A stretch of DNA of 64,000 bases from Octopus bimaculoides (lineage: Eukaryota), in assembly GCF_001194135.2 (NCBI RefSeq), contig NC_068999.1:2686294-2750293 (forward strand), given 5' to 3'. A program made the position numbers and the translations under genes. Below, one piece after another: positions 1,460-59,174 of the stretch (positions are counted from its first letter, which is position 1; every line of letters starts with the position of its first letter). Under the pieces are notes generated by a model. That model was not told where the DNA came from. It saw only the letters and a program-made list of their open reading frames with translations, and searched no databases.

Positions 1460-2116
1460 GTTTGGTTCCAGAATCGCAGAGCAAAATGGCGCAAGAAAGA
1501 AAAGGTCGGTCCGCAATCCCATCTTTATGGCCCCTATTCCAATAACCTGAACGTTGGACGTGTTGGAGTGTTGTCCAGCCATCAAAGTTATGCGGATCTC
1601 TTGATGAAATCCTACGAAAATCATATTCTTGGTCGATACACCCTGGCCTCGGCCCAGGGTGCTAACCCACAGTTCTCACCCCCAACGGCAGCAGCTGCTG
1701 CTGCTGCTGCTGCTGCTGCCGCCGCAGCTGGCTTTTACAGTCCTATGGCGCTAGCAGCAGCAGCGGGACTATCGTCCACGTCATCGTCTCAGATAAGATC
1801 TTTTCCTTCGTTCAGCACACATTTACCTCCCCCTGGCTCTTTCCAGCATCTCTTGGCAAGTATGACGTCAACGGCAGCGAAGACCCGCGACGGCAACAGT
1901 AACAGTAACGGGTCGCCTGCCAGCAACAATGTTAGTTCTGGAGAGTCGACGTCGGCGTCGCAGTCTCCGCCGACCACAGCAGGGCTGACGGTCACTTCGG
2001 GAAGTTTCGCTGATGCTGACAGGCGTTCGTCAAGTATAGCTGCTCTTCGAATGAGAGCCAGAGAACACGAAATTAGGCTCGGGCTTAATGGCAAATGTAA
2101 CAGTATTGTTTATTAA
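1460..2116 (+). CDS. Arx: Aristaless/Arx-type PRD-class homeobox gene, terminal coding exon (upstream exons not found in the window)
   Basis: Acceptor ttctttgttcag|GTT at 1459/1460 is the typical PRD-class phase-0 intron before VWFQN. Translation: VWFQNRRAKWRKKEKVGPQSH (aristaless-type post-homeodomain KVGPQSH), SFQHLLASMT, and OAR motif DRRSSSIAALRMRAREHE. Stop TAA at 2114-2116. Confidence 0.93.
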   Translation, partial: VWFQNRRAKWRKKEKVGPQSHLYGPYSNNLNVGRVGVLSSHQSYADLLMKSYENHILGRYTLASAQGANPQFSPPTAAAAAAAAAAAAAAGFYSPMALAAAAGLSSTSSSQIRSFPSFSTHLPPPGSFQHLLASMTSTAAKTRDGNSNSNGSPASNNVSSGESTSASQSPPTTAGLTVTSGSFADADRRSSSIAALRMRAREHEIRLGLNGKCNSIVY

Positions 2117-2138
2117 GGGGCGAATATTTGGGGGAAAA

Positions 2139-2457
2139 AATAAAAAATAAAGAAAACAAAATATTGTAAAATTTACAACTAAATTTATAACAACGAAATT
2201 CTGTGAAATTTAGAGAAAATAATTGCATTAATTCCATTATTAACTAATATTTGTTCATAAACTAAATGGAAAGATAAGGGAGTTTCTTTTTTTTTTATTA
2301 TTTACATTAACATTTTTCTACCTGCCAAATTTCGCATTTAATTCAAAAGATTCGAGAAATCCAAGAAATAAAACTGAACGAAAAAAAAAAAACATGAAAC
2401 TATGAGAATCTAAAGTCAAAAAAGCAGCCGTTTGTTTTTTTCACTTCCAACAATAAA
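2139..2457 (+). terminator. Candidate poly(A) signals of the Arx 3' UTR
   Basis: AATAAA at 2139, 2146, 2367 and 2452 downstream of the stop codon; which one is used is unknown. Confidence 0.4.
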
Positions 2458-3336
2458 ATTGTACAACTAAGTGTAGGAAAATGCAATATTAACAAGAACA
2501 ATTCTGGAAGGACATTTTTGCTTCAGATCCTTTTAATATTGTATTGCCAGAAATAATTTTAATTTGTACTGCAAAAAAACAACAAAAAAAGCGAAAACAA
2601 AAAGGAAACAAAAACACAAAACAAAACTAGTTTTAATTGCATAACACGACCAAGGGTCCTGTTACATGTACAATAGAGTCTTTTAATTATTTCATCGACC
2701 AATTTGATCAAAATCTTCATTCTCTTTCCACAGTATTTCCGATCTCTTTTCACTGATGTCCATGTATGGATGTATGTAATTCTGTGCATGTGTTCATGTG
2801 ATATGTGTGTATGTTTTTATGTGTATGTCTGAGACAAGATGTGCATGCATATGTGTGTGTGTACATATTTATATATATATATATATATATATNNNNNNNN
2901 NNNNNNNNNNNNNNNNNNNNNNNNNNNNNNNNNNNNNNNNNNNNNNNNNNNNNNNNNNNNNNNNNNNNNNNNNNNNNNNNNNNNNNNNNNNNNNNNNNNN
3001 NNNNNNNNNNNNNNNNNNNNNNNNNNNNNNNNNNNNNNNNNNNNNNNNNNNNNNNNNNNNNNNNNNNNNNNNNNNNNNNNNNNNNNNNNNNNNNNNNNNN
3101 NNNNNNNNNNNNNNNNNNNNNNNNNNNNNNNNNNNNNNNNNNNNNNNNNNNNNNNNNNNNNNNNNNNNNNNNNNNNNNNNNNNNNNNNNNNNNNNNNNNN
3201 NNNNNNNNNNNNNNNNNNNNNNNNNNNNNNNNNNNNNNNNNNNNNNNNNNNNNNNNNNNNNNNNNNNNNNNNNNNNNNNNTATATATATAAAGTACGATT
3301 TATTCGTAATCAGAGGTGTTCGTAAACCGAGTTACT

Positions 3337-3382
<46 letters not shown>

Positions 3383-3419
3383 CATACACAAAGGCATATA
3401 TATACATACATATACAAAT

Positions 3420-3479
<60 letters not shown>

Positions 3480-3967
3480 TTGTATTTGTAAATATATATA
3501 TATATGTGTGTGTGCGTATGTATATATGCATGTGGCTGTGTGCGCGTATGTCTATGTGTGTATGTGAGTAAGCACACGTGTTTATTTAATTAAAATCATA
3601 TATTTCGAATTGCCTGATAATCTTTTTTCTGTTCTTGTATTTGGTTTGCAAAATTCTTAATGTGAACACGTGTGTTGAAACACATTTTGTTGTATCTTGG
3701 TCGATGAGTGGAGGTGGGGGAGGTCATAACGCCTGTAATAAACACACGCACTGGCTTTATCTCACTCTCTTATTATTAGCCAATTGCTAAGTTATTTAAT
3801 CAATCAATTAATCGATTGCTTGCTTAATCAGTCGGTTAATCAATCAATCAGTTGTTTGTCAAAGTCCTTTCGTCGCTTTTCGCAACCTCATCAATGACAT
3901 GCTCTCCTTACTGCAGGCCTGCTTCAAGTCTGTTTCTTGTTTGGTTACTATTTGTGTAGTGTTTTAG

Positions 3968-4170
3968 GCGATGAGCTGGAAGAATTGTTTGCACCTCAAG
4001 CAAAATGCTTTGTGGCATTTCGTCTGTCTTCATGTTCTGATTTCAAATTTCGCCGAGGTCGACTTTGCCTTTCATCCTTTCGGAGTCGATAAAATAAGTA
4101 CCATTTGGGCAATGTAATCGACTTAGTCCCCCTCCTCCGAAATTGTTGACCTAGTGCCAAAATGTGGAAT
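3968..4170 (+). mobile_element. tRNA-derived SINE family A with central domain GGTCGACTTTGCCTTTCATCCTTTCGGGGTCGAT and (ATT)n tail
   Basis: Recurs at ~6675-6850, 7440-7575, 11380-11520, 17095-17300, 31250-31455, 35680-35830, 46850-47030 and 61590-62210. The core resembles the Nin/Deu-type SINE domain (from memory, unverified). Confidence 0.7.
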
Positions 4171-6351
4171 CAATATTTATATAGTATAGCCATATCTCTA
4201 GTTCGTTGGTTAAATAAGTAATCAACTGACTAATAGCAAAGAAATGAAACAGAACCAGTGCGTGTGGTTATTACTGACGTGACGACCCTCCCAAGATACA
4301 ATCTTTTTTTATTTTCTGTTTATTCTCAGTTTCCAGTAGCATGTGATAGCCGATTTAGTGATCGAGTTCTGAACAGCCCTCCACGCAGCCGAGTATCACT
4401 CAACACTCAAACTACATTACTTTTAGATCGTCTTCATTCAGAGTGTTCCTCAATGCAAATTACAACACACTAATCTTTTAAGTTAACGATCGATGTTTCA
4501 GAGAGTAACACTCAATCAGTTTCCATTTCCAGCAACCAGCTTGACTTTGCCTGTTTTCATAACCCAAGGCTTGACGGAACCACACTGTATACATTCACAG
4601 AAGTCCAGAAAAACTGATGTAATGATAATCAAAATACTCGCCGTTACTTTGTTTCCAGCTATTACAGAATGCTTCTTACAATGGGTAACAGACAATATAC
4701 CAAAGTGATTAGGAATGTATTTAAGATAATTAGGTAAAATCTAGGAAAAAATATTAATACTGAAAATCAAAAAAAAAAAAAAATACGTATCGCAAATCGA
4801 GGAGATAAATCATATAGAACAAATCAAACGGTTTTATATTTATAAAATAGAACAAGTGAAACGGTTTGTATCTGTGATGTAGAAGTCAAAGAGTTTTACG
4901 TTGGTTGCAGACGTTTAAGATTTTGGTACTGAGCTCAAGTTTCTGCTTTTCTAGGTCACTTTCTTGCGAAAGTTTCGAACGTGTAACCTGATTCTATAAG
5001 TGGAGAAGCTACACACAGAGACACATCATTTAATAGGAGCCTGTATGTTGTCAATTGACCTGCAATAAATTGCTGACAAACCTCTCTCAAATAACACTGT
5101 CTCGAAAAAGGACGGTGTACACTGGACAATGTCGAGCTACACGTTCCTAAAATAGACGGGTTGGCTTTTGGCACCAAACAACAACATATTTACTCGCAGT
5201 TTAGATAAGATGTAACATGACAGTTTTTCTTCTTTTCTTATTTATTTTTTTGTTTTACTCAACCCTCTGATTTTCATCAATATTTTCACCATTTTCATGC
5301 AATATTTCTTTGCAAGGTGTCAAGGGGTAAGTTAACGGTGAACAAAATCCACAGTTCGATTTCGACTCTCGTTTGCTTCTCTATTCATTTTACTTTGTTC
5401 ATGTCTTTGAAATCCGTGTATCTCTATCAGAAAGTATCACAGTGAAAGACCTCAACGATTTCAAACAAAAATAATTTTGACTGCCTCACTTTGGAATGAA
5501 TTATTTCTCCAAGAACTTAAATTTCGATGTAGCAATATTTTCGGTAAACTGTTGCATTTTCTGTCAATGACAGAAAATGTTATGAGATAGTTCTAACAAC
5601 GACAACAGCAACAACAACAACAACAACAACAACAACGAAAGCTTCAACTACAACAACTGTTTAGTAATTGATTTGGACTGATTCCCATTTTCCTCCTTTT
5701 ATCCCACTTTTATCCCTCTTTTATCCCCTATATTCCCTGAGGTTCCAGTCGAAACTCACTACGATCTCGAGTTAAAGGCTCCCTCAGTTAATTCATCTGA
5801 AGATTAACCAGTTATTTAACAGGGTTCACAGTTGTGGCTTCAAAGTTGGAGTAGTATTCATCGTATTTTCGATAAATAGTCTCCCACGCCAAATAAGCGA
5901 CTTGTCGCTTCGCGTAGTATGTATGTACGTATGTATGTATGTGTGTGTGTCTGCGTGCGCATATGTATAAGTATGTATGTATGTATGCAAGTTGGTTGGT
6001 AGGTATGCGATGCGATACGAGTCCAGTTGTTTACATACCTCAATGTTGAAGGGAAACACACGTGTCACGATACACAGACGTCAATGTCATGTTCCACAAA
6101 ACTAAATTAATTAAATATTTCGAAGTCGAATTTATATTTCAGGTAAACAGACAGGATGTTCGTGGTTGTGGATACAACGTGCGTGTGTGTGTGTGTGCGT
6201 GCACGTGTGTGTGTGCGTGCACGTGTGTGTGTGCGTGCACGTGTGTGTGTGGTTTGACATTAAACTATATAATTTTAATTTGTGTAGTAATATATTGTCA
6301 TGTGAAGAGTGTTGGTTTGTGGTGAGGGTCAGTCTGTTGTTATTATCATCA

Positions 6352-6404
<53 letters not shown>

Positions 6405-6616
6405 GTTCAGTAGTTTTATTTTTATAACGTGCTTTCACTTCACTACCGAGCGCAGCTCTGTGCGCCTTGGGTATGTGCTGTGGTTTGCTGTGGTGCTCTT
6501 ATGTTTACTGTATTGAAAGTGTTTTGCGTAGGATGTGTGCAGTACCCAGTAGTGCAATTTTCTGTATGTTATATATATTTGTAAGTCCTGCTATTTTTGT
6601 TATGTATTTGTCTGAA

Positions 6617-6673
<57 letters not shown>

Positions 6674-6844
6674 CGTTAGTCCGCCGGACAAAATGCTTCA
6701 CAACATTTCGTCCGTCTACATTCTCAGTTCAAATTCCACCGAGGACGATGTCAATGAAATAAATACCAGTGAAATACTGGGTTGATATTATATCGACTAT
6801 CCCCCTCCCCCAAAATTTCAGGCCTTGTGCCTACAACAGAAAGG

Positions 6845-6908
<64 letters not shown>

Positions 6909-7287
6909 GCACACCGGACAAAATACCAAGCAACATTTCGGCCGTCAGGATTTGGGAAAGAAATTAGTGAACGGTGAGGAGGAGATGTCAGCAGCAATCC
7001 CCACCCCATCATATTTACATTAACAATATACTAATATTTAATGTTAGTTCTACCACATTGCACCAATAACAGACTGTATTCCATTGTACTCCATTGTACA
7101 CCACATTATACTAACAAGCCACTACTGTAACCCTACAATATACCATCGTACGTCCATAGCCGACCGACATCCACTTGGCGCTTCTCTAACGCATCATTGC
7201 ACAAACAGAACTCGTACCACATCACATTAATAATACTCCGCATTAACATCACACCACATTAACACAGCCAGGCACTAACACTAAACA

Positions 7288-7325
<38 letters not shown>

Positions 7326-8512
7326 GACAAGAATTTTGCTGAATATTTTCCATTAGTCTATAAAGACGGCATCTTAGGCGTACGGTGAATTCTCACGGTG
7401 AGTAATTACAAGAACAATAGCAACAACAACTTAAATAAAGATCCTTTCTACTACAGGCACAAGGGCGGAGATTTCAGGAAAGGGTCAAGTCGATTACATC
7501 GACCCCAATGCTCGACACTGAAAGGATGAAAAGCAAGGTCGACCTCGGTGGAATTTATACTCAGAACGTAAACCTTCAGTCAACATTTTAGCTGATCTTT
7601 GATGTCTTCAGATTTACCTTTAAATTGAGCAAATCCCTGATTTTCTTTTTTTCCGAGTTTAGTCATTCTTCGACATTGGGCTCCTCCATATTTTCTATCT
7701 TTCAACCATTTTTTCTCTGTTTATTCTTTCCCTTTTTCCTCTTCAACAGTTTGCAAAATCTGTAGCTTCCTTTTCTCTTCCATTGTCCTAAGATAATTGA
7801 GGTTCTTTTTAATGTGAGAGGTTGGTGGCTTCGGTTTCCTGCTAATCAGTTTCTAGGACTCTTTCATTATTTCTCAATCCTCGACTGGCGTGCCTTCAGA
7901 ATAACATCTTTTATGATTCTCTCTTATGGTGGCTGCCGTCGATCTTCTCTTCTCGTTTACCAGTTGTTCTGAAGAAAAAAAGCCTTTACTTCATCGCAGA
8001 TGATAGAATGTGATTAGAGGATGTTTAGGTTGCTATTTCTGACTTGTGTCAAATGACTCCATAGAGAATCCCTGTCATCAGGGGCCACAGATGGAGGAAT
8101 AAATCAGCAGAATATCCCAAGAATGCATTGTTATCGAGATTGCCGGGGAAAATTATGAAGTTTGGCAGGAACGGAATTCGCGACGTCACTGTAACAATGA
8201 ATTTATTTGATGCACCTTGGCTTTGTGAATAAATCTAGATAAGCTTGGATTTTCAGAAAAAGAAATCAACCAACTAACTCGCACATTATAAATACAATTT
8301 GTAAGTGGAACAATAAAAATATGCAAGACTTCTCTCAGGTTCAAAATATGATGTTGTTGTTGTTGTTATCTACATTCCATCGATGGAGATTTGTATCTTT
8401 GTTAGAAACCAGCTCTTTTCTCAATGGAAGAATTTAAATAATTAAAAACAGATAGCATATTTACATACATACATGTGTGTGTGTTTGTGTGTGCGTGTGT
8501 GTACAAATATGA

Positions 8513-8573
<61 letters not shown>

Positions 8574-8648
8574 CGTGTATTATATATATATCTATATACA
8601 TATATACAAACATGTATATATATACATATACATATACGTACATGAATA

Positions 8649-8697
<49 letters not shown>

Positions 8698-8740
8698 TTA
8701 CATATGCATATGTGTATATATATAGGTGTATGTATGTATG

Positions 8741-8802
<62 letters not shown>

Positions 8803-9186
8803 TAGATAGATAGATAGATACATATATATCAACATACTGACAAACACACACATACATACATACACACATGCAGACATACATGCACACATGCATATATGCA
8901 CAGGCATATGTGCATGCCGCTATGTAAGAAGTGCTGATAGGAGACTTCTGTTCCTCAATTTGTTTATATAATTAGAAATATGAATAATTTAGTTAGATAA
9001 AATATACGTCTTGCAGGTTTTGTCTGATAGAGAGGAAGATGATGTGTGCAGTTAAAGCTACAAAACCGCGCGTGCGCACACAAACGCACGTACGCACACA
9101 CACACATCTATTGTATACATATGCATATGTCATGTACGTACATACACACACTCACATATATACATATGCAAATATACATGCATATG

Positions 9187-9239
<53 letters not shown>

Positions 9240-9601
9240 NNNNNNNNNNNNNNNNNNNNNNNNNNNNNNNNNNNNNNNNNNNNNNNNNNNNNNNNNNNNN
9301 NNNNNNNNNNNNNNNNNNNNNNNNNNNNNNNNNNNNNNNNNNNNNNNNNNNNNNNNNNNNNNNNNNNNNNNNNNNNNNNNNNNNNNNNNNNNNNNNNNNN
9401 NNNNNNNNNNNNNNNNNNNNNNNNNNNNNNNNNNNNNNNNNNNNNNNNNNNNNNNNNNNNNNNNNNNNNNNNNNNNNNNNNNNNNNNNNNNNNNNNNNNN
9501 NNNNNNNNNNNNNNNNNNNNNNNNNNNNNNNNNNNNNNNNNNNNNNNNNNNNNNNNNNNNNNNNNNNNNNNNNNNNNNNNNNNNNNNNNNNNNNNNNNNN
9601 N

Positions 9602-9665
<64 letters not shown>

Positions 9666-12427
9666 AAACGCATTTGTAACAATGTATGCCTTCAATTTTC
9701 TTTTATTTATTAGAATTCTTCCTAGAATGTGAGAGCTGGTTTCTAACAAAGACAGAAAACTCGATCAATGGAATTTGGATTACAATAACGATAAGGGTCC
9801 ATTATTAAAGTTTAGAAAAGTCTTGCATATTTTTACTGCTCCACTTACAATTGTATCCGTTAACTACGTGTCCGCTGATTTCTTTCTTCTTTCTTCTTTT
9901 TGCTTGAAAATCCTTGAAAATCCTTGCTTTCCAAGATTGTCATTTAGACTTTTAATAACATAACCGAATGAATTGGTAATTATTGGTATGGATGTGAATT
10001 TATTAGCAGGTTAGAAGAACTGCGGGTTTCCTAGCGATTGTCCCTAAGTATTATTAGCTTTGTTGGATCTATGTAAAGTAACTTTTGCTCAAGCTGATTG
10101 TCTAAGAAATAAGTTCTTGATTTTTGCATTATTTTCAAGAACCATTCCAGCATGTATGTATGCAAACAGAGGTGACAGAGGTTAGATCTGTGTAGTATTC
10201 TGTCGGTTACGACGACAAGGGTTTCAATTGGTCTGATCAACAGAACAGCCTGCTTGTGAAATTAACATGCAAGTGGCTGAGCACTCCATAGACACGTGCA
10301 CTCTTAACGTACTTCTCAGGGAGATTCAGCCTGACACAGGATGTGAAATCGCTGGCTTTTTCAAATCCAGCTACTACTCATTTTAGCCAGCTGAGTGGAC
10401 GGGAGCAACGTGAAATAAAACTGTCTTGCTGAAGGACACAATGCGCCGCTAGAAATCGAACTCATGACCTTTCGATGCACCTTCACAATTTGTATGGAAG
10501 CACCTGTGAAAGACAGTGAATATTGCGTGCTTTGTGTTGAAAGATAGTTTCCAAACCTCTCTTCAACTGAGCAACACAGTGTTATCTGCCGGTTTTGAAA
10601 ATAAAGTGAGATGCCACAACTTGGTTTTAACATACATTTTATATTGGGTGTATATAATAGTATATCGTTGATATTATGTTAAACTGTCGTATGTTCAAAT
10701 TTTGTCAAATGTGTTTTTTTTTTCAATATTTAATTTTGCTTGCAATAACTGGTTCTTTTGGTCAAACTCATCATATCTCCAGCTGCCTCAGATGAAAATT
10801 GTCAAAGTGTAGCACAACGGTTTAGCATTTTTCAAAAGTGTCATAAGTCTCAAATACGACAGTTTTGCAAAAATATTTCTGACTGAAAAATATCATACAT
10901 GCATGGAGTTACGATTTTATGCTCCCAAGAAAGTATCATTGTTAAGCTGAAATTGTTGCTAATGTAAACAGAAGTGGAATGGTGAAACTATTTTTTTTCC
11001 TTTTCTGAAAAAGCAACGTTTTGGACTTACGACACTTTTGCATAATAGCAACGATANNNNNNNNNNNNNNNNNNNNNNNNNNNNNNNNNNNNNNNNNNNN
11101 NNNNNNNNNNNNNNNNNNNNNNNNNNNNNNNNNNNNNNNNNNNNNNNNNNNNNNNNNNNNNNNNNNNNNNNNNNNNNNNNNNNNNNNNNNNNNNNNNNNN
11201 NNNNNNNNNNNNNNNNNNNNNNNNNNNNNNNNNNNNNNNNNNNNNNNNNNNNNNNNNNNNNNNNNNNNNNNNNNNNNNNNNNNNNNNNNNNNNNNNNNNN
11301 NNNNNNNNNNNNNNNNNNNNNNNNNNNNNNNNNCTTATACGTATGCGCGCGCGATTGAGTGAGTGTGAGTGTGTGTTGATTTGAACTCAGAACGTAAAGA
11401 CGAACGAAATGCCGCTAAGCGTTTCCCCCTTGCGTGCTAAGGCTTCGGTTAACTCAGAGTCTTAATGAGAGTAATAATCCTTTCTACTAAAAGCACAAGG
11501 CCTGAAATTTGTGAGGAGCTACTGCCTGAAGAACCATTTTGGGCGAAACGTATAAGTCCTTGTGCTTCGTCTTTCTGTCTCATAAATTTCGACTCTACCC
11601 ATCTATTCAGTACTTTTTCAATGAATGTTACCTGCTGTTCATAATATATTAACATGTATACATAAACACACGTGCATGTATGTATGTATGTATGTATGTA
11701 TGTATGTATGTATGTACGCACGTACGTATGCATGTTTGTATGCATGTACGTACGTATGTGTGTATGTATGTAAATACGTATGTATATATGTTTGTATGTA
11801 TGTATGTATGTACGTACGTACGTATGTATGTATGTATGTTTGTATGTTTGTATGCATATATGTACGTAGGTATGTTTATTATAATATTATTAAAAGCCCT
11901 AACTTCAAATAAATGGTTAAATATACGCTCATATCTGTATATACATATATACATACATAATATATGCATTCATGCATACACATGTGTGTGTATCGTGTGT
12001 GCGTATGATGTACATCGTGTACGTGTGCTTGTTGTGTGTATATAATGTATGTGTGAATACATACATACATACATATATATGTATATATATATATATATAT
12101 ATATNNNNNNNNNNNNNNNNNNNNNNNNNNNNNNNNNNNNNNNNNNNNNNNNNNNNNNNNNNNNNNNNNNNNNNNNNNNNNNNNNNNNNNNNNNNNNNNN
12201 NNNNNNNNNNNNNNNNNNNNNNNNNNNNNNNNNNNNNNNNNNNNNNNNNNNNNNNNNNNNNNNNNNNNNNNNNNNNNNNNNNNNNNNNNNNNNNNNNNNN
12301 NNNNNNNNNNNNNNNNNNNNNNNNNNNNNNNNNNNNNNNNNNNNNNNNNNNNNNNNNNNNNNNNNNNNNNNNNNNNNNNNNNNNNNNNNNNNNNNNNNNN
12401 NNNNNNNNNNNNNNNNNNNNNNNNNNN

Positions 12428-12458
<31 letters not shown>

Positions 12459-12480
12459 CAGAGAGAGAGTGTGTGTGTGA

Positions 12481-12530
<50 letters not shown>

Positions 12531-13076
12531 CAGACAGACAGACAAAGTGAGTGAAGGAAGGGGGATTATAAATACTTATACTTATACATATATATATATA
12601 TATATGCACATACATAAGAATACATATATACACGCACGGATATATGCAAATGTGTGTGTGTTGGTCCTACAACTCCTTTTGGGGTCGTAGTGGAGCCATT
12701 CTGACATACAGCATGTCGTGGACATTTCAAAAACCCGGTGGAGCTCACTCTAATCCAAGAAAGGATAAAAAGCTTTAAGTCGGCAGGATTCGAATCAAAA
12801 ATGCAGAGAACAAGAACGAATACTGCAAGGTAATCTACCTGATCTAAGGATATGGTTATTTCTATCTATCTATCTATCTATCTCTATTTCTCTCCCTCTC
12901 CTTATCTCTCTTTCTATATCTCTATCTGTCTCACTTTCCATATATGTATGTATGTATGTGTGTGCGTGTATGTACGTGTGTATATGCGTGTGTTGTGTTT
13001 ATATGTATGTATGTATATATATGTGTTTGTGTGTGTATGTGTATGGATATGTATTATACATACACACACACTATAC

Positions 13077-13160
<84 letters not shown>

Positions 13161-13715
13161 GTATACACATACTATATATATATATTTGTATGTATACATG
13201 TATATATATATATACATGTATAAACTAGCGAAGGCAAAATGCTTTCGTTCTCAAATTTCGCGATTTTTCACTTCTTTATTTATTTATACATTTATTTATT
13301 TTCTTCACTCTTTCTTTCTTTCTTTCTTATTTTTCCTGTTTTTCATTGTCTTTTTATTCCAGTTTTATTTCTTTCTTGACTTCTTTCTTTTCTTACCGTT
13401 TCGCTCTCCTCCTCCTCTCCCCCCTCTCTCTCTTTCCTTAAATTAAATTGACCAGAGATGAAAGCAAAGAGATAATTAGTTATTATAGTCGCCATTTTGT
13501 AGTCGTGTTTTTCAATAGTAAATATATGGAGTGGAAATGATAACGAGGAATGTGAAAGAGTTAACGGATGATATTGATAAATCNNNNNNNNNNNNNNNNN
13601 NNNNNNNNNNNNNNNNNNNNNNNNNNNNNNNNNNNNNNNNNNNNNNNNNNNNNNNNNNNNNNNNNNNNNNNNNNNNNNNNNNNNNNNNNNNNNNNNNNNN
13701 NNNNNNNNNNNNNNN

Positions 13716-13754
<39 letters not shown>

Positions 13755-14664
13755 GATGTTTCCTTCGTTATCGCACTACGACTAAATGTAGGAGAAGCTT
13801 CCTTACCACCAACCCAGTCACCTGGCCTCTGGCATTCTGAAAGACGCACCCTGTTTGTAAATTTATGATTTAATTTCCTTATGACTTCTCTATCAACTGT
13901 TAAAAGTCAAGTATGCTTCCATTTCCCCCATGCACGAACCCACATCCTGTCATTCAGTCTGATTGCTTACCACGCTCGCCGCTAGCAGAGTCGGAACAAA
14001 AAGACGGTCTACGCGATCAGATGCGATGCCTGCAAGCCAAGATGGACGAGAAACGTGTAAATAATTAACGCCACCTCATCAACAATGCCCCGCATTGTTC
14101 AGGTACAATTACCAGCGAGATGACAAAGGTTAATAGATTTTGTTCTGTGAAGATGAGAGATACCAGCTGTATGGAAAATAAGAACGTTTCCAAATCGGAA
14201 TGGTGTGCCGAAGTGGTAGCAATAGTGACAGTGATTCTATAGATAATTACAGTGATACGTCATTCTCGGTAGATAGCATGATAGATGGTTAAACATCGGA
14301 TGAAGACTGGTCTTTTAATTTACAGCATCCATTGTAGTAAAGCTTATTCAAACAAACAGCTAACTGTTTGCTGAAATGGCAGGAGAGATGCTTCATTCTT
14401 TCCTACTGAAGGAGATCAGCCAAAGAAAGTTTTCAATGGATGAATTTTATAACAAAAATAAATAAATCAATTATATTCTCGTAAGCCACCATATTTTGCT
14501 TGTGTATAATTGTTTAATTATTTACACTGTTATGCAAATGAGCTTAACATTTGTTTGTTATTCACTGCCAACACGGCCTATTAGATGTGCGTGTGCGCGC
14601 GCTCATGTATCCCCTTTCTTGCTCTCTCTCTTCTTCATTAAACTACACACGCGCACACATATTT

Positions 14665-14745
<81 letters not shown>

Positions 14746-16254
14746 CATACATATATATGTATATATATGTATGTATATATACATACATGCATAAATATAT
14801 ATATATGTACATATATNNNNNNNNNNNNNNNNNNNNNNNNNNNNNNNNNNNNNNNNNNNNNNNNNNNNNNNNNNNNNNNNNNNNNNNNNNNNNNNNNNNN
14901 NNNNNNNNNNNNNNNNNNNNNNNNNNNNNNNNNNNNNNNNNNNNNNNNNNNNNNNNNNNNNNNNNNNNNNNNNNNNNNNNNNNNNNNNNNNNNNNNNNNN
15001 NNNNNNNNNNNNNNNNNNNNNNNNNNNNNNNNNNNNNNNNNNNNNNNNNNNNNNNNNNNNNNNNNNNNNNNNNNNNNNNNNNNNNNNNNNNNNNNNNNNN
15101 NNNNNNNNNNNNNNNNNNNNNNNNNNNNNNNNNNNNNNNNNNNNNNNNNNNNNNNNNNNNNNNNNNNNNNNNNNNNNNNNNNNNNNNNNNNNNNNNNNNN
15201 NNNNNNNNNNNNNNNNNNNNNNNNNNNNNNNNNNNNNNNNNNNNNNNNNNNNNNNNNNNNNNNNNNNNNNNNNNNNNNNNNNNNNNNNNNNNNNNNNNNN
15301 NNNNNNNNNNNNNNNNNNNNNNNNNNNNNNNNNNNNNNNNNNNNNNNNNNNNNNNNNNNNNNNNNNNNNNNNNNNNNNNNNNNNNNNNNNNNNNNNNNNN
15401 NNNNNNNNNNNNNNNNNNNNNNNNNATATACAGAGTTAGCGGTTACAGTAACCGACTAAGGGATAAAATATCCGTATATACCATCGGTATCCGTTACCCG
15501 TGTTATCCCCGAGCATTGGTGTGCAGACACACCATACACGTAGAGTGCAGATAACAACAGGATAAACAAGAGTTTATTAGGAACCAATATAAATGATTAC
15601 AAATATCGTACACACATACACGCGCGTACACACACACATATATATATTGTATTATGTTTAGAAACGATGCATGGCTCCAGTATTTTCGACTTGAGTCAAA
15701 TGCAGCGAGCCACTCCAAATCCTTGTACGAGTATCCGTAGGAGTGGAGTCAGGACAGGTTAGTTTGTACTGGCATCGAATTCTATAAATCGTAATAATGA
15801 AACCAAATCTAATAATGATGTTTTGAATGCATTTAATACGAACGTTTCAGAACTGAGTAATATAAAACAGGAAATACACCCCCTTACGCAATACCTTCTT
15901 CAGTCAATACATTTAGAAGTGCATTAACTGAAGTAGGTCTTGCGTTAGGGATGTATTTCTTATTATGCAGATCTGAAACGTATGTCTTAAATGATTTCAA
16001 CATATCATTCGGTTTATGTATGTATGTATGTATGTATGTATGTATGTATGTATGTATGTATGTATGTATGTATGTACGTACGTACGTATGTATGTATGTT
16101 TGTATGTTTGTATGCATATATGTACGTAGGCATGTTTATTATAATATTATTAAAAGCCCTAACTTCAAATAATTGATTAAATATACGCTCATATTTGTAT
16201 ATACATATATACATACATAATATATGCATTCATGCATACATATGTCTGTGTATC

Positions 16255-16525
16255 ATGTTCAATTCCCGGCGACGCGTTGTGTCCTTGAGCAAGACACTTT
16301 ATTTCACGTTGCTCCAGTCCACTCAGCTGGCAAAAATGAGTTGTACCAGTAATTCGAAAGGGCCAGCCTTGTCACATTCTGTGTCACGCTGAATCTTCCC
16401 GAGAACTATGTAAAGGGTACACGGGTCTGTGGAGTGCTCAGCCACTTGTACGTTAATTTCACGAGCAGGCTGTTCCGTTGATCATATCAGCTGGGACCCT
16501 TGTCGTCGTAACTGACGGAGTGCTT
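16255..16525 (+). mobile_element. SINE family C
   Basis: GTGTCCTTGAGCAAGACACTTTATTTCACGTTGCTCCAGTCCACTCAGCTGG; an inverted copy lies at ~10205-10480. Confidence 0.65.
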
Positions 16526-16599
16526 CTTTCTATGCATGTATGTATGCATGTATGTATGTATGTATGTATGTATGTATGTATGTATGTATGTATGTATGT

Positions 16600-16815
16600 A
16601 TGTATGTTATTTGTGTGTCTGTGTTTCTCCCTCCACCATCCTTTCACAACCGATGTTGATGTGTTTAGGTCTCCGTAACTTAGCGGTTCGGCAAAAGAGA
16701 CCGATAGAATAAGTACTAGGCTTACAAAGAATAAGTCCTGGGGTCGATTTGCTCGACTAAAGGCGGTGCTCCAGCAAGGCCGCAGTCAAATGACTGAAAC
16801 AAGTAAAAGAATAAA
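16600..16815 (+). mobile_element. SINE family B with internal microsatellite
   Basis: CGTAACTTAGCGGTTCGGCAAAAGAGACCGATAGAATAAGTAC...CAGTCAAATGACTGAAAC; recurs at ~19070-19380, 26695-27065, 41480-41720, 49600-49800 and 63870-64000. Confidence 0.7.
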
Positions 16816-16840
16816 AGACAGACAGACAGACAGACAGATG

Positions 16841-16937
<97 letters not shown>

Positions 16938-19122
16938 GTACAATCAAAGGATCCAAGTGTAGGAAGTTTATAAGCTTCGAGCATGTATGCAGTTAGTGTA
17001 GAAGAGAAAATGTAGACAATATTCGATAAATAGATTTATTAACATCGTACGTTAAACTATATCGTACGTTCGTACCATATTGAAATTATTTTCTGCTATT
17101 GGCACAAAGCCTAAAATTTGAGGGAAGGGGTGCTAGTTGATTACTTCGACCCTAGTGCTTGACCGGTGCTTACTTTATCGACCACCAAAAGGATGAAAGG
17201 TAAAGTCGACCTCGGCGGAATTTGAGGACATAAGGAGCGGACGAAATGCCGCTGAGCATTTTGTCCGGTCTGCTAATGATTCTGCCAGCTCGCACCAGAT
17301 TGAAATTAAAAGGAACTTTGATAAGTTGACCGTCTCCTTACGACTCCCGGCTTAGCAGCTGAAGCGGCTAAAGATGCGATTAAAATTCCCAGAAGCGAAG
17401 GAATGGAACAGGTGAAACACATGTGTATACACACACACACACACACGCATTCGCGCGAGCGCAGACACACACATGGGCGCAGGCATGGCTGTGTGATAAG
17501 AAGCTTGCTTCCCAACCACATGGTTCCATGTTCAGTCCATCCATCCATCCAGCCAGCCAGCCATTCATCACTCTATCTGTCTGTCCGTCCGTCCGTCTAT
17601 TCACCCATCCATCTTTTCTGCCCTCTATTCCTGGGAAGATCGAGAGGGAAGGGTCCTTTTGATAACTTGTAGAATTCACCCCATCTTCTATAAGAATTTA
17701 CCGTTGATAAAAGAGCTGGAATCCACAGAAATGACTTGCCTTGNNNNNNNNNNNNNNNNNNNNNNNNNNNNNNNNNNNNNNNNNNNNNNNNNNNNNNNNN
17801 NNNNNNNNNNNNNNNNNNNNNNNNNNNNNNNNNNNNNNNNNNNNNNNNNNNNNNNNNNNNNNNNNNNNNNNNNNNNNNNNNNNNNNNNNNNNNNNNNNNN
17901 NNNNNNNNNNNNNNNNNNNNNNNNNNNNNNNNNNNNNNNNNNNNNNNNNNNNNNNNNNTATATATATATATATATATATGAGTGAAATTACTCATGGAAG
18001 TTAATGTTCAAAACAATCTTTTATTTACACCAACAGAAAAGAAACACCAACAATTCAGCGTGTAGTTGTTTGTTTGTTTTTTGTCTATTATTTTTTTTTT
18101 ACTCTAAAATCTAACGAAATCTGTTTTCTCTTTATTATGTCATGTACATTTGTTAATAATGGATTATTTGTATAACAGCCTTAATATAATCTATATTTCA
18201 TCGGTCTATTTAAGAGAAGCAGTCAAGCATGCTCTATTAGTTCCACTATAACGCACCGAATCTCACAAAAAGAAAAAGGATAAAAAAAAAGAAAGCTTCG
18301 AGTCAATGGCGTGGTTTAACTGTTGTCTGCACTGTTTTTGTGTTATTGTTATTGCTGTTGTTGTTGTTGCAGGTGGTTGTGGTATTGGTTGTGGTTGTGG
18401 TGGTGGGCCCGGCCCCTTTGATCGAGAATTCATCAGTTAATCTCCACGCTCCTGAATGTAGCCAATTAATGTTTAATTCTTCTGCTCGACTATATCAGCA
18501 GTCATTAATAGTTTAGTACAAGTTCTGTTATTCAGCGAGCCATCTATTCTTGCAAGCTACTTGAGAAGACAATAGACCTCTGGCAAACTGGCTACTAAAT
18601 AATGACTGACTCCTGCTAGAAGAGAGCAATCACTTAAAAATGTGCAGCGTCCAATGAAGTTGGCTATAATCACTGAAAAGCGGGGTAGAATCAAGTTTTA
18701 GCTAATGACCACCGATCAATATATTTACACAATACCTGCACTCGTGTTCCATCACCGACTACACATACCATTGCAAACCAATTGCCATCCTCTCTCTCTC
18801 CAACTCCTCGTCCTCCGTTCATCACCCCTACCTACTATCTCTATATCACTTCTTCTCCTTCTTCTTCTTCTTCTTCTTCTCAAATCTACACCATTTAACC
18901 TGATAAACTCCCAGCCAGTTCAGCTGGCGTCCTGGTTTCAATTCATGGTTAAGGATACTTCACTCGCACGACATCATTAACTTGACCCCCCACCCCGGAA
19001 AAAATAAATAATAATAAATAACAAAAAAAAAAGGATGAACGCCACACAATCTTATTCCACACCTTGTTCTACTAAAGCCTTGCGAGTGGATTTGGTAGAC
19101 GGAAACTGAAAGAATCCCGTCG

Positions 19123-19164
<42 letters not shown>

Positions 19165-20237
19165 TTTATGTATATGCGTGTATATGTTTGTGTGTGTTTT
19201 TCCTCGCAACATCGCTTGACAACCGATGCTGGTATGTTTACGTCCCCGTAACTTAGCGTTCGGCAAAAAGAGACCGATAGAATAAGTACTAGGCTTACAA
19301 AGAATAAGCCCTGGGGTCGATTTGCTCGGCTAAAGGCAGTGCTCCAGCATGGCCGCAGTCAAATGACTGAAACAAAAAGAAAAAATGAAAAAGAATATAT
19401 ATATGTATNNNNNNNNNNNNNNNNNNNNNNNNNNNNNNNNNNNNNNNNNNNNNNNNNNNNNNNNNNNNNNNNNNNNNNNNNNNNNNNNNNNNNNNNNNNN
19501 NNNNNNNNNNNNNNNNNNNNNNNNNNNNNNNNNNNNNNNNNNNNNNNNNNNNNNNNNNNNNNNNNNNNNNNNNNNNNNNNNNNNNNNNNNNNNNNNNNNN
19601 NNNNNNNNNNNNTTAGATTTACAACAAATCATTTCTTTTTATTGGAAACCATAAACATCCCAAATACAGTTTTTCCTGGCTTATTCGCACTGGTCAAGGT
19701 GAATCCACGGCTGGGCAGATAAAAAAGAATAAATACTTCGTCCTTCTAGTTGTTTATCTTATGTCTTTAACCCCCATTTCCCCTTAATTTAATCTAAATT
19801 TGAAGAGGTAAATATTTAGGAGGGGGTCAAGCGAAGGAATTCGCACCTGTCAAAAGTCGATAATAACCAACCATACACTTGGCCACGGGGAAGTCAAACT
19901 ACAAACATTGCCGCACGATTATCAAGTTGGTCAGACATTCTTGATGTTATTTTCAAACAGACGATATCGACTTTTAAAAATGTCTCTGTCATACTGAGAT
20001 GCCTGGCATTGTATTGGTGAAGTAGACGTGGTATTTTGACTTGTTTAACCCCAGGTTAGTTTTTGACTGAGCAAACTTTCAATTATAGATGTTCCAAACA
20101 TGAGCATCCCATTTTTTTTTCGGACATAAAATAACTCTTAGACAAAATAATCTAACCTGATGTGTCTAATGTCAGTTAGCAATCGTAACGGGTTCAATAC
20201 TTAGTGACTGTATCCGTCAGTATATGAAAGAATTCTA

Positions 20238-20364
20238 CAGGGTGTCCACAAAGTTTGGGTACATGGCGATTAACACGTACTTTAAGAAATTATTATTTCT
20301 TATATTTAATTGTTTATGTTATGATTTTATTTACTCCGTGTACCCAGACCTTGTGGACACCCTG
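20238..20364. mobile_element. Tc1/mariner-type MITE
   Basis: TA|CAGGGTGTCCACAAAGTTTGGGTACATGG ... CCGTGTACCCAGACCTTGTGGACACCCTG|TA; 29-bp TIRs with 3 mismatches, TA target duplication. Confidence 0.85.
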
Positions 20365-23300
20365 TATAATATATTAAGTAACTAAGTGAAACAAGTGCTA
20401 AATATATATTTCAGCCATGGATACAACACAGTGTCTCTGTTAAGATACGAACCGCTAACCTCTTGTTTTGCTGCATACCATTGATTCGGTCATCGCGTTC
20501 CCTGTTATTGATTAGACAAAACAAAGTAAGCAGTAAATTTTCTTTGGCCAATACTTTATAGCCACCAACTAAACAAACTAGATATATCAAAATATATTTG
20601 GCCTTGATATCGTATGACTTTGGGCTCAAACCCAAATTTAGTGCAACTTCTCTTCCAGCAAACAAAATGTTGTGCTTTTCTCTATTTTAGAAGCCTTCGT
20701 CTTCAGCAAATATAAACCACTTTATGGATTCTTTATAAAATTCCTTAAATCCTTGAAATTTCTTTAGTTCGGATTACATGATTATTACAGATGACATTTG
20801 GTGAGATGTTATGGTCTAAATGCTGTATTAATCAGCACAAGACTTCGAGAAAATGTTCTCCCTGGATTTTACAGAAATAGATTGAAATAAAAACAGTATC
20901 GAATCTATAACAATGTCATACATTGATTTATATAAGTTACGATCTTGTGTCCTATTGTTTAAATAGTTAAAGTATTGCAAATATCTTTTGTAATAATTCC
21001 TGGATAGCCGAGGCTTTTGAGCTGGCGTCCACTCCCGATTAAAGTAATTTCGCTTCATTTTAATCATATATCGGATTGATTATAATATAATAGTTTCTTC
21101 CAGAGACGAGAAACCTTAGGCAAAGGATTCACCATCTCGAAAACCCAACCAAAGCAGGAGTAAATTATACAATACACCTACAGATGAGTTGACTGTTTAG
21201 TGGTGTTGTGTGGTGCCAGTTTCCCGTTAAATCCTAAACTACCCCACTCACTAAACACAATCAGTCATGGTTTACTAGTGTGGTACCACCCAAGACTGAA
21301 ACATAACACACAGGGAATATTAAAGCTATGAGTTTCTCTTGGTTACTTACTAAACCTGATACATGACCCAATTTTACACGACAAAGCTGTTAGAAGCATT
21401 TTGCAAACCTTGAAACCAAGACGACAGGCTCACGACAAGCTGCATCTCAGCTCAGAGAATAAAAATGGAAAGTTTCTCATTGGAAGCCCACTACCATTTG
21501 TTCCATGAATAGGAATCTGTAGATAATGTCTTCAGTGGTTCCCCTATCAGCAATATCTCCCTTTTTCAGTTTGTAACGTCAGGTATCACAGAATTTCAAG
21601 TAATCGCTCGTTTCTAACCGAATATTCCACAGATATCGTGGTTAACAGTAACTCATGAGTCTTGCCATTATCTTTGCCTCACGAGTTTAACATTCACCAT
21701 TTTTTCTATGATTAACTCCAAAGAAAAAACAAGACATTGAAAGAACATTATCCACTGGTCAATCCTCTTTTTTTTTTTATAAATATATATATATATCAAA
21801 ATCTGGTCTTTCCAGGTTGGACCTCACTTACCAATTTCTTTAAACATCCACGGACTTCTAATCTGGACGGCTGTCTCTTCTCTAATAATAAACTTTACTC
21901 CTCCGACCCCCTCTCTCACGATTCAATGACACTTCTACTACTCCTCCTGCTTTACCCCTCTCTCACTATTCAATGACTCTTCTACTATTCTTCCTTCTTG
22001 GTTTAGCAACGGTGGCGTAATTTTCTTTCAAACTGAGTTTCGATACGTACTACAATTAATTGTTTGTACGAAAAGGTCTATGCACATCAAATTGTCTTTA
22101 AATTAAGTGGCGGCAGAATTATCGCTGAACTTTTAAAAGGTTAATTTATTGTTGCCTACCGCCAGCTATATGTTGATTGTTCAATGATAGGGAATGGAAG
22201 CCAGCTATTTTGTACTGACCCCGAATGAGATGACAAATTATATCGTTGTTTTGATGAAAATTATTCGTTGTTTGAAAAATATTGTTGAAGTTTAATAAAA
22301 TTTAATATACACTCAATGCATGAAGTGTCATTGTTGGGCCCAAGGCCCACTGAAGAACCCTCCACAGGAGCTAGCTTAAAAACCGCTCGATAGGGTGGGT
22401 TTTAAGCTAGTATTAATATACAAACAGCATCACTTATTTCTCTTTGAGGCACAATTCCCTAATGTCCAAACTGGTTCAGCTCTGTTCCTCTCGTTAAAAC
22501 TGGTCTCATCTCAAAAACAAAGATTTTAGCTCCAATCTCTCTTCCTTTTTGATTCCTCTAAATTCATCTGATGACGCAAACGTTCCCCAGATTCCTCTAA
22601 TCACCGACACGTATTACTGTTTCTAGTCCTACATGGACGACATCTATATTTTACCTCAACTCTTAATACACCATCCGACGTCTTTGTTTCTTCACTTTTA
22701 AAAGAGCCAAATTAAATAGTTCTAAACAGCCACCCATCGCACCCTTTTAACCCTGATCGGTCCTCCAAACACTTTTTATCGATATCTTCTTCACCTCCAG
22801 TCCTAACCCAGCACTCAGTCTCAGCCTGTCGGGTCGTGTGTCACTTTTGCTTAAGGAAACCTCACAAACCGCCTGCTACTTCATTCAGTCAGAGACCCGA
22901 CAATTCTCAACTTCTCACCTTTCGGAGATCATCTGTTTCTACTTTGACTTATTCCAGACAGTTGTGTGGTCACTACAACTTTCCTACATCTCAATGTGGT
23001 CACTGGTCACTATCGCCTTCCTTGGTATGGACTTTCACATCTCTAACACAGCCCTAAGTGGTTCATTTTCAAATATCATCATCATTGTTTAACACAGCCG
23101 GTATCCTCCTCCTCTTCTACCCATTACAACTTTTATAATTGTGGTCACGTGGTTAGGCAAGAGGCCCCTGCTATCTGCAAGATTAGAATCTCTTCGTTGA
23201 ATTTCAACTCAAAACACAAACTTATATAGCAAGGTGTCTTTCCCGACAATGGGACAATTCTGTTCTCTCTACCATCGTGAACATTATTAATCGACCCTCA

Positions 23301-24457
23301 AAGGATAAAAGGCAAGTTTGATCTCACAGCAATTCGAAATCAGGGAAGCGGTCCAGAACAAATACTGCTTCTCCCTCTTCAATGACCACCACTACAGAAT
23401 CTGTGGAGCCAGATCTACTCTTCCCCATCACCATTGGGTTCTTTCTCTCCTACAGCCTCAATACACTCCAGAACTGCAGAGAACCTGCTCTTCAGTATAA
23501 TTTACCATTGGTTCCTCATTCAATCAAGTCTTCAGCAGTCTGATGAGAATCTTTTATTCATGTAATTATTTTATTAGGACACAGCTTTTATAGAAATTCC
23601 TTCGACACAAAACAAGGAAATATTTGTCTGAGAGGAATTGGAAAATATGTTACAAACATTGGATTGGGTGATATTGTCAAAGTGAATGTCACCACTGGAA
23701 GAACATCATTGAAGGTGAAGGTCATTATTGGAGAGGTGCTGAAGTTCTGCTGGAATGGCATTGTTGAAGGTGGAGGTCACTGTTGGAGGGACCTTACTAA
23801 AGATGAAGTTCTTCTGTCAGTATTTTTCAATACACAGACATTTCTACATAATCATCATCATTAACCTAATGATAGCATGAATGATGACAGACAGACACTG
23901 GGCAGATTTTTGAGAAAACAAAACCAAACAATAAATGAATGAAAATAAATATTTTATTTTTTCATTAATTTTATCATCATATTTGTATAAAATAAATTTG
24001 TTTACACTACATGACCTTGTGAGTTTGTGTGTGTTGTACATGCTGACAATGTTTGGATGGAACACCAGAGACCAAAATCTTATTTGAGATTCCTGCCCTC
24101 TTGGAGAGGTTGCAGACCATGTCTCACTCATATATTCCAGTCTGGATTTAGTTTCTATGGTTAGATGTCCTCCCTATTGCGCATGTATGTGTGTGTGGGC
24201 AGGGGAAAGCATTAAAAAAAAAAAACAGATGAGTTATAGAAGTTTAATGTAAGCCCTCATTTGGAGAATTGGTTTAACAAACCAGTAAGGAATGGAGGAA
24301 TTAAAACTGAAGGAGGGGGAATCTTATAAAAATGGAAAATGAACGAAAGAAAAACTTTAAAGAAATATTTTCGGTAATTTTATGTTGATAAACAATAATT
24401 GGGAAACAATGATACAGCTTTAATGCAAGTATCAAGAGAATATTTCAGTGTATGTGG

Positions 24458-24495
<38 letters not shown>

Positions 24496-24791: not shown

Positions 24792-59174
<34,383 letters not shown>

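Follow-up and report, generated by a model that had tools for sequence, protein, structure and literature searches.

The interval between the brain-patterning homeobox gene ARX and POLA1, which codes for DNA polymerase alpha's catalytic subunit, is among the mammalian clusters of ultraconserved enhancers that have been studied most closely. Here we analyse a 64,000-nucleotide stretch of the genome of Octopus bimaculoides (contig NC_068999.1, positions 2,686,294 to 2,750,293; hereafter the window), which holds the last exon of an Arx gene and a complete POLA1 gene arranged tail to tail. The human/mouse locus (Xp21.3-p22.11) carries the ultraconserved ARX enhancers hs119-hs123, hs145 and uc467. 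With one exception, the human ARX enhancers are located between ARX and POLA1, downstream of ARX (PMC8955779), and uc467 sits in the last POLA1 intron, adjoining ARX (PMC1964772). Human PCYT1B, POLA1 and ARX have been found duplicated together, in that order, and a human duplication of 41 kb comprises the terminal POLA1 exon and the entire ARX coding sequence (PMC8955779). An earlier note on the window had stated that human ARX and POLA1 are adjacent and tail to tail, which matches this literature (PMC8955779, PMC1964772). The octopus locus resembles the mammalian one in several respects: the two genes are orthologous immediate neighbours with their 3′ ends facing, a developmental transcription factor stands beside a housekeeping gene, and non-coding conservation is found 3′ of Arx. 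The two loci differ in POLA1 itself. Mammalian POLA1 is very large and carries uc467 in an intron, whereas octopus POLA1 spans 34 kb and is devoid of conserved intronic blocks. In octopus, the intergenic interval (22.7 kb) forms the larger compartment. Sequence-level conservation with the vertebrate elements would not be expected.

The genomic regulatory block (GRB) model reportedly goes back to the work of Kikuta and Engstrom in 2007. According to its logic, cis-regulatory constraint keeps a developmental gene and a bystander gene adjacent (PMC5728398, PMC3514665). A survey by Irimia et al. in 2012 described 595 conserved ancestral microsyntenic pairs (CAMPs; PMC3514665). As in CAMPs and GRBs, a transcriptional and developmental (trans-dev) gene is joined in octopus to an unrelated, non-paralogous and presumably broadly expressed neighbour, here a homeobox factor to a replicative polymerase subunit, and the two are adjacent across phyla. 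Among the taxa covered here, the adjacency is seen in three phyla: Mollusca (octopus window), Annelida (Owenia fusiformis) and, according to the literature on human and mouse, Chordata. This is below the formal threshold of four major taxa used by Irimia et al. The octopus pair differs from a typical GRB, as POLA1 is without the long, element-bearing introns predicted for a bystander. It also differs from most CAMPs, in that Arx and POLA1 are not seen within 10 kb of each other in Lottia and amphioxus, two genomes that keep most CAMPs (PMC3514665). This may explain why the main text of the survey names neither Arx nor Pola among its examples (PMC3514665).

In cephalopods, 275 metazoan microsyntenies were reported by Schmidbaur et al. 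in 2022 to be retained in Euprymna and other coleoids (PMC9023564). Octopus Arx-POLA1 is comparable to these blocks as an ancestral linkage that outlived the coleoid reorganisation and has a relatively large intergenic distance. It differs from them in size, since a block in that study needs at least three genes shared with at least six distant species (PMC9023564). Six supplementary files of the study contain no mention of Arx, Pola1, aristaless or 'polymerase alpha' (PMC9023564). Within the literature searched, no paper was found that names Arx-Pola1 synteny outside vertebrates. That developmental genes can keep unrelated neighbours over deep evolutionary time is already known, and the Arx-POLA1 pair appears to add a case, which might be contained, without being named, in the supplementary lists of a survey.

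Arx and POLA1 in octopus and Owenia

In the octopus scaffold, Arx and POLA1 lie tail to tail with 22.7 kb between their stop codons. Within the window Arx is represented by its last exon alone, the remaining exons being upstream of base 1. This exon follows a splice acceptor (ttgttcag at 1452-1459, with its AG at 1458-1459) that is preceded by a polypyrimidine tract. It is translated without interruption into VWFQNRRAKWRKKEK, a tract of 14 alanines, PPPGSFQHLLASMTS and DRRSSSIAALRMRAREHEIRLGLNGKCNSIVY, ending at a TAA codon at 2114-2116. The 14 homeodomain residues that it encodes (positions 47-60, VWFQNRRAKWRKKE) are of the paired class and include Q50. Close to the C-terminus, the OAR motif PF03826 was detected by Pfam with 31.2 bits, against a cut-off of 20.1, at residues 187-204.

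Since only 14 homeodomain residues are present in the window, residues 1-46 being encoded upstream of it, the orthology of this gene was judged through the relatives of its last exon. In a first homology search, the named matches were nearly all aristaless-like or ARX-like; a few matches from scallop, mussel and scorpion carried the automated names ALX1-like or Rx1-like. A library-wide HMMER search with the exon was then used to classify every match with a full homeodomain according to its arm type. The Arx/aristaless arm (QRRYRTTF with DVFTREELA) was found in 49 full-homeodomain matches, at ranks 3 to 145. All 46 such matches at ranks 3-110 were of this type and thus preceded the first Alx-type protein (KRRNRTTF...DVYAREQLA...RERYG; rank 111, E=2.6e-5) and the first Rx-type protein (rank 113, E=3.0e-5). 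A mammalian ARX (P0417), which ends in TQLNILPGTSTGKEVC, was placed at rank 92 with E=1.7e-6. The homeodomain of scallop Arx scored 116 bits with Drosophila Aristaless (3a01) versus 110 bits with human ALX4, and the homeodomain flank KWRKKEKVG agrees with that of Al (KWRKQEKV) and differs from that of ALX4 (KWRKRERFG). The splice acceptor before homeodomain residue V47 has an identical position in the Arx genes of Octopus, Owenia, Pecten and Argopecten. An N-terminal octapeptide/eh1 motif is present in the orthologs of Owenia (SCYDIASLIG) and scallop (SSYDIDSLIG), and the counterpart region of octopus lies outside the window. Drosophila al and vertebrate ARX form one family. On the arm types of its relatives, their HMMER ranks, the OAR motif and the acceptor position, the octopus homeobox gene is judged to be an Arx/aristaless ortholog.

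Two observations on the Arx protein may be added. The alanine tract lies C-terminal to the homeodomain and is encoded by mixed GCA, GCT and GCC codons; the Arx orthologs of Owenia and scallop are without such a tract at the corresponding position. Vertebrate ARX is noted for polyalanine tracts, which are placed elsewhere in the protein. The closest full-length relative of the exon, a 445-residue protein (P0361) with 59% identity to it, agrees with Owenia Arx at every homeodomain position and terminates in NGNIVY. It may be the Arx of another cephalopod or mollusc.

On the other side of the interval, the exons of POLA1 were located with human POLA1, which served as a guide only, and splice sites were then chosen. 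The four variable N-terminal exons were added by means of the Octopus vulgaris protein, increasing a draft of 35 exons to the final 39. The model was afterwards checked against the PDB, O. vulgaris and the argonaut Argonauta hians. It runs on the minus strand from an ATG at 59174-59172 to a TGA at 24794-24792, with a coding sequence of 4314 nucleotides for 1437 residues, in which the only stop codon is the terminal one. All introns are GT-AG and the reading frame is intact, as expected for a gene and not for a pseudogene. The final protein is 93.2% identical to O. vulgaris POLA1 (P0241) over 1437 of 1440 residues, and the latter carries PF12254, PF03104, PF00136 and PF08996. The 35-exon draft (1246 residues) was aligned with human POLA1 (PDB chain 8d96_C) at 1425 bits and E=0, its residues 115-1243 matching residues 302-1455, and was 77% identical to Argonauta POLA1. 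Similarity to known POLA1 proteins is colinear from end to end and takes in both the N-terminal region and the zinc-finger domain at the C-terminus. All three motifs of family-B polymerases, A (DxxSLYPS), B (KxxxNSxYG) and C (YGDTDS), are present.

At the DNA level, the exons are colinear with those of Argonauta POLA1. This holds for exon 1 as well, where window positions 59129-59235 match positions 10046-9938 of the Argonauta locus (L005), at the start of POLA1. Exon 2 lies beyond an intron of 4,176 bp that contains three assembly gaps, and a further gap is located in intron 34; exon order and reading frame are unbroken across them. Introns have a median length of 0.69 kb and reach 4.2 kb at most. 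On this gene model, the region from 59174 to 24792 is a complete and intact POLA1.

Against the Arx exon and the POLA1 model, the earlier note's reading of the letters could be confirmed. The end it gave for the Arx-type gene (2116, plus strand) and the limits it gave for POLA1 (59174 and 24792, minus strand) were exact. It had described the 3′ introns of POLA1 as short, about 0.8-1 kb, and the last eight measure 439-1031 bp. It had also left room for a paired (PRD) class gene other than Arx, and the HMMER ranks favour Arx/al over Alx and Rx.

To place the octopus locus among other animals, POLA1 and Arx proteins were looked up in public assemblies, each view consisting of the gene and 10 kb on either side. 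Owenia fusiformis is an early-branching annelid; its comparison was set beforehand as a test in an independent lineage. In its chromosome-level assembly (locus L007, CAIIXF020000004.1:11.69-11.75 Mb), the immediate 3′ neighbour of POLA1 is a homeodomain and OAR gene in tail-to-tail orientation, separated from the POLA1 stop by 6,188 bp with zero N. The last exon of this gene is 42% identical to the octopus exon over its full length (E=8e-42), and the two proteins have related C-terminal ends (RKCNGIVY* in Owenia, GKCNSIVY* in octopus). The Owenia protein corresponds to P0362, as shown by its length of 407 residues and an identical C-terminal end. P0362 combines an octapeptide-like motif with a homeodomain in which 2 of 60 positions depart from mammalian ARX. 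The Owenia gene is an unambiguous Arx ortholog. A PCYT1-like gene is found on the far side of Owenia POLA1, and the resulting order PCYT1-POLA1-Arx is that of human PCYT1B-POLA1-ARX. These two features support the idea, put forward in the earlier note, that the pair dates from the bilaterian ancestor.

Octopus and Owenia thus share the same pair, its tail-to-tail orientation, the exon structure of Arx and its C-terminal motifs. They differ in the length of the interval, 6.2 kb in Owenia versus 22.7 kb in octopus, and Owenia POLA1 hosts a nested gene. The latter encodes a Methyltransf_21 protein of 292 residues and is located in a POLA1 intron on the opposite strand (L007 24514-25392, minus strand).

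The intergenic interval

From stop to stop, the octopus interval measures 22,675 bp, close to the ~22 kb of the earlier note. It includes 2,510 N in eight gaps between positions 2893 and 19612, out of 13 runs of N in the whole window. About 3.3 kb consist of interspersed repeats with copies elsewhere in the window and about 2.1 kb of tandem repeats, and about 15.2 kb are unique. We searched both strands for Pfam families in stop-free segments of at least 45 residues, filtered for non-trivial composition, a step that dropped the most microsatellite-like segments. No family was detected at E<=0.01 in these segments. The interval yielded no Rfam family at gathering thresholds and no tRNA with ARAGORN. 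These three scans gave no sign of a hidden gene, and at that level the description of the interval in the earlier note as having no other recognisable gene holds. An unannotated non-coding RNA or a gene made of very short exons may still lie within it. In Argonauta, NCBI annotates no gene within 10 kb 3′ of POLA1.

Repeats resembling short interspersed elements (SINEs) occur both in the intergenic DNA (3963-4180, 16592-16818, 17090-17293 and 19164-19388) and in POLA1 introns (41139-41300, 46652-46813, 49409-49608 and 52467-52628). Dozens of copies of the same family are present in the Argonauta POLA1 locus. Because copies are found in both loci, the family is older than the Octopus-Argonauta split or has been active in both lineages.

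Non-coding conservation was investigated by comparing the whole window by blastn with the Argonauta hians POLA1 locus, which reaches 10 kb 3′ of POLA1. As a control, matches on the opposite strand were considered; the best of these had E=7e-7. One single-copy, AT-rich element (18146-18254) clearly exceeds this level, with 75% identity over 112 bp and E=3e-12. It is colinear in the two genomes and lies 3′ of the POLA1 stop at similar distances, 6.5 kb for Octopus and 6.8 kb for Argonauta. The element contains TAAT/ATTA cores, has no second copy in the window and has one match in the Argonauta locus. Fold z-scores of -0.7 to +1.5 gave no sign of a structured RNA.

Two further regions are tentative only, because the control reaches E=7e-7. 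The block at 17984-18100 (70% identity over 126 bp, E=2.5e-6) has an E-value on a par with the best control match. In the region 19824-19942, two short blocks, one of 28 bp (93% identity) and one of 41 bp (85%), keep a spacing of 80 bp in both genomes, each having an E-value at noise level when taken alone. These short blocks could belong to the POLA1 3′ untranslated region.

No conserved non-coding block between Octopus and Argonauta was found in the POLA1 introns: the non-repeat matches are all exons and the others are SINE-like. The intergenic DNA holds at least one robust element conserved with Argonauta, and the DNA around it and the introns are not alignable. This agrees with the proposal of the earlier note that constraint need not sit in POLA1 introns, the conserved signal in the comparison with Argonauta being intergenic. 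Conservation outside exons, as expected for CAMPs and GRBs, is thus observed at 18146-18254, and the long bystander introns with conserved elements of GRBs are absent from octopus POLA1. Between Octopus and Owenia, the intergenic DNA has no detectable sequence similarity.

Origin and persistence of the adjacency

Taken together, these data make it probable that the window is a retained piece of an ancient bilaterian neighbourhood, PCYT1-POLA1-ARX, and it may have persisted through the cis-regulation of Arx. Judging from gene order, the adjacency of Arx and POLA1 was very likely inherited from the ancestor of protostomes and deuterostomes. Common descent is by far the simplest reading, because Owenia repeats the octopus and human arrangement and the probability of a chance match is small. 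We estimate this probability, for a specified gene as the immediate 3′ neighbour in a specified orientation, at ~5e-4 or less per lineage, even with the two genes restricted to a single chromosome of ~1000 genes. That the adjacency then persisted through Arx cis-regulatory elements located in the DNA 3′ of Arx is a closer call, which we put a shade below even. Under such a mechanism, the DNA 3′ of Arx would be part of the Arx regulatory landscape, its elements would need to remain in cis to the Arx promoter, and breakpoints within it would be selected against. POLA1 would act as a housekeeping neighbour bounding this landscape and not as an enhancer-bearing bystander. In octopus the constraint would fall on the intergenic DNA instead of the POLA1 introns, leaving only a small target for a permissible breakpoint, adjoining the 3′ end of POLA1. 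A more extended proposal can be made, about which we are rather doubtful: PCYT1-POLA1-ARX may have formed a bilaterian-wide genomic regulatory block for >550 million years, unnamed in systematic surveys, with the vertebrate ultraconserved ARX enhancers as elaborated descendants of its landscape and the octopus intergenic elements, such as 18146-18254, as Arx enhancers in the equivalent position.

Several observations weigh against an ancient block held together by regulation. On one 39-Mb chromosome of the scallop Argopecten irradians (CM084277.1; L002/L003), POLA1 occupies 15.69-15.73 Mb and Arx, on the same strand, 19.366-19.373 Mb. The distance between them is 3.64 Mb, and the gene 3′ of POLA1 is a Tubulin gene. 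Linkage at the scale of the chromosome thus survives in the scallop though adjacency is broken. In Pecten maximus, no POLA1 exon is found within 10 kb of Arx. Likewise, no Arx lies within 10 kb of POLA1 in Lottia, where the 3′ genes are a gene for an unrelated 440-residue protein and a 3-beta-HSD-like gene, nor in amphioxus, where the 3′ gene is a TLD-domain gene. The adjacency, which the earlier note had proposed to score in other animals, recurred in Owenia and not in Argopecten, and within 10 kb it was not seen in Pecten, Lottia and amphioxus. In Argonauta, Ptychodera and Asterias, there is no called gene or Arx-like exon within 10 kb 3′ of POLA1; these views are uninformative because the distance in octopus is 22.7 kb. 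In addition, one element alone clearly exceeds the control level in the octopus interval, it may serve POLA1 or another function instead of Arx, and of the eight gaps crossed between Arx and POLA1 a single one (19409-19612) is bridged by comparative data. These results show that at least one lineage has had the block broken up, with apparent losses in limpet and amphioxus, and that any constraint is conditional.

Alternatively, the adjacency may be ancestral but retained neutrally, with no selection to keep it, having simply stayed unbroken in octopus, Owenia and vertebrates and been broken elsewhere. Linkage was lost without obvious consequence in the scallop, where both genes are still on one chromosome. 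In Lottia and amphioxus, where most ancestral microsyntenic pairs are preserved (Irimia et al., PMC3514665), the pair is unseen within 10 kb. The octopus POLA1 introns, short and without conserved blocks, do not behave as those of an enhancer-bearing bystander either. However, coleoid genomes are heavily rearranged, which makes the neutral survival of two neighbouring genes improbable (PMC9023564), the vertebrate interval is packed with ARX enhancers (PMC1964772, PMC8955779), and Octopus and Argonauta have one or more conserved intergenic elements in common amid unalignable DNA. Neutral retention is the main rival as regards the cause, and on balance we find it unlikely. Independent re-association of the genes and an artefact of scaffolding are minor rivals.

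Re-association in cephalopods, annelids and vertebrates, aided by a shared ancestral chromosome, would account for the separation of the pair in slowly rearranging genomes (scallop, and Lottia and amphioxus within 10 kb), and the location of both scallop genes on one chromosome raises the odds of a secondary juxtaposition. Yet it would require three independent events, each leading to immediate adjacency in the same tail-to-tail orientation at an estimated 5e-4 or less per lineage, and Owenia shares with human PCYT1 on the other side of POLA1 as well. We regard it as extremely improbable. In a short-read draft assembly, a mis-join across one of the eight N runs between 2893 and 19612 would create a false adjacency. 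The Argonauta matches that keep order and orientation on both sides of a gap support the join at 19409-19612 only, and the Arx side has been seen in one cephalopod assembly. Against this, a random mis-join would have had to hit upon exactly the ortholog of the POLA1 neighbour known from Owenia and human, and to set it in the matching orientation. At most of the intergenic gaps, (TA)n or (CA)n microsatellites adjoin one side or both, which is typical of local short-read dropouts and not of mis-joins, and the exon order and reading frame of POLA1 are intact across four gaps. An artefact thus appears very improbable.

If the pair and PCYT1 are indeed ancestral to Bilateria, the vertebrate regulatory block would have been built on an older scaffold. 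The locus would then be open to comparative study in tractable invertebrates, using the 6-kb interval of Owenia and the 22-kb interval of octopus. The octopus contributes a contrast that bears on how regulatory blocks hold together: the pair survived in a heavily rearranged genome, its conserved non-coding signal being intergenic instead of located in the introns of the bystander.

Feature coordinates and neighbouring observations

The features of the window and of the Owenia locus are collected in Table 1.

Table 1. Features of the octopus window (positions 1 to 64,000) and of the Owenia POLA1 locus (L007).
Feature	Coordinates	Strand	Basis
Arx/aristaless-family last exon (homeodomain residues 47-60, C-terminal region, stop)	1460..2116	+	Translation, acceptor position, closest relatives
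14-alanine tract, Arx C-terminal region	1688..1729	+	Translation
OAR/aristaless C-terminal motif DRRSSSIAALRMRAREHEIRLG	2018..2083	+	Pfam PF03826
Arx-POLA1 intergenic interval, stop to stop, no recognisable gene	2117..24791	.	Pfam, Rfam, tRNA scans
Tentative second conserved block (Argonauta +7513-7634)	17984..18100	.	blastn
Conserved non-coding element, single-copy, AT-rich	18146..18254	.	blastn vs Argonauta hians
Tentative pair of short conserved blocks (Argonauta +2605-2725)	19824..19942	.	Colinear
Complete POLA1 (DNA polymerase alpha catalytic subunit), 39 exons	24792..59174	-	Gene model, O. vulgaris identity, Argonauta colinearity
POLA1 exon 1, phase-1 donor	59135-59174	-	Argonauta DNA colinearity
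POLA1 exons 2-7	54849-54958; 54171-54267; 53985-54065; 53488-53600; 49941-50053; 48994-49259	-	
POLA1 exons 8-13	48544-48628; 47323-47507; 47083-47195; 46465-46581; 45852-45926; 44732-44805	-	
POLA1 exons 14-19	43837-43901; 42896-42933; 42363-42482; 41798-41885; 40824-40885; 40078-40173	-	
POLA1 exons 20-24	39806-39922; 38865-39028; 37884-38013; 37558-37671; 36215-36314	-	
POLA1 exon 25, polymerase motif A DFNSLYPS	35295-35401	-	
POLA1 exon 26	35005-35157	-	
POLA1 exon 27, polymerase motif B KLTANSMYG	34575-34697	-	
POLA1 exon 28	34368-34400	-	
POLA1 exon 29, polymerase motif C YGDTDS	33737-33829	-	
POLA1 exons 30-34	33269-33474; 32307-32439; 31736-31867; 30822-30897; 29752-29850	-	
POLA1 exons 35-38	28581-28738; 27427-27549; 26482-26598; 25710-25785	-	
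POLA1 exon 39 (last), TGA stop 24794-24792	24792-24913	-	
Owenia PCYT1-like gene (CTP_transf_like)	L007 1-2683	-	5′ of POLA1
Owenia POLA1	L007 10001-47305	+	
Owenia homeodomain and OAR gene, 407-aa product	L007 from 53494	-	3′ of POLA1

Some minor sequences were noted within and around POLA1. A tRNA-Ser(GGA)-like sequence in intron 12 (45163-45237, plus strand) was detected by Rfam (tRNA, 41.7 bits) and also by ARAGORN; it could represent either a genuine tRNA gene or a SINE head that derives from a tRNA. In intron 1, an interstitial telomere-like repeat, (TTAGGG)3 at 58646-58663, abuts the gap at 58684-59073. Upstream of octopus POLA1, a stop-free stretch of 199 residues (62463-63059, minus strand) has no Pfam match at E<=0.01, and by eye its C-terminal part resembles a remnant of a Tc1/mariner transposase. 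In Argopecten, a Phage_integrase/DUF3504 gene is found just 5′ of POLA1.

The other side of POLA1 also has recurrent neighbours. No PCYT1 exon is present in the 4.8 kb of the window upstream of octopus POLA1. PCYT1-like genes (CTP_transf_like) stand head to head with POLA1 in Lottia (L004 1-1378), Owenia (L007 1-2683) and Ptychodera (L008 1-5922), so that limpet, annelid and hemichordate have the arrangement of human PCYT1B. The Lottia fragment matches rat/human CCT-alpha (3hl4, E=2.5e-44) better than PCYT2. PCYT1-POLA1 looks like a second ancient adjacency, kept more widely than POLA1-Arx. In Branchiostoma floridae (L006 5515-8655) and Asterias amurensis (L009 5804-7763), the position 5′ of POLA1 is taken by EBP (emopamil-binding protein), and human EBP is also X-linked. 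The presence of EBP in place of PCYT1 may reflect a rearrangement of the POLA1 neighbourhood on the deuterostome side.

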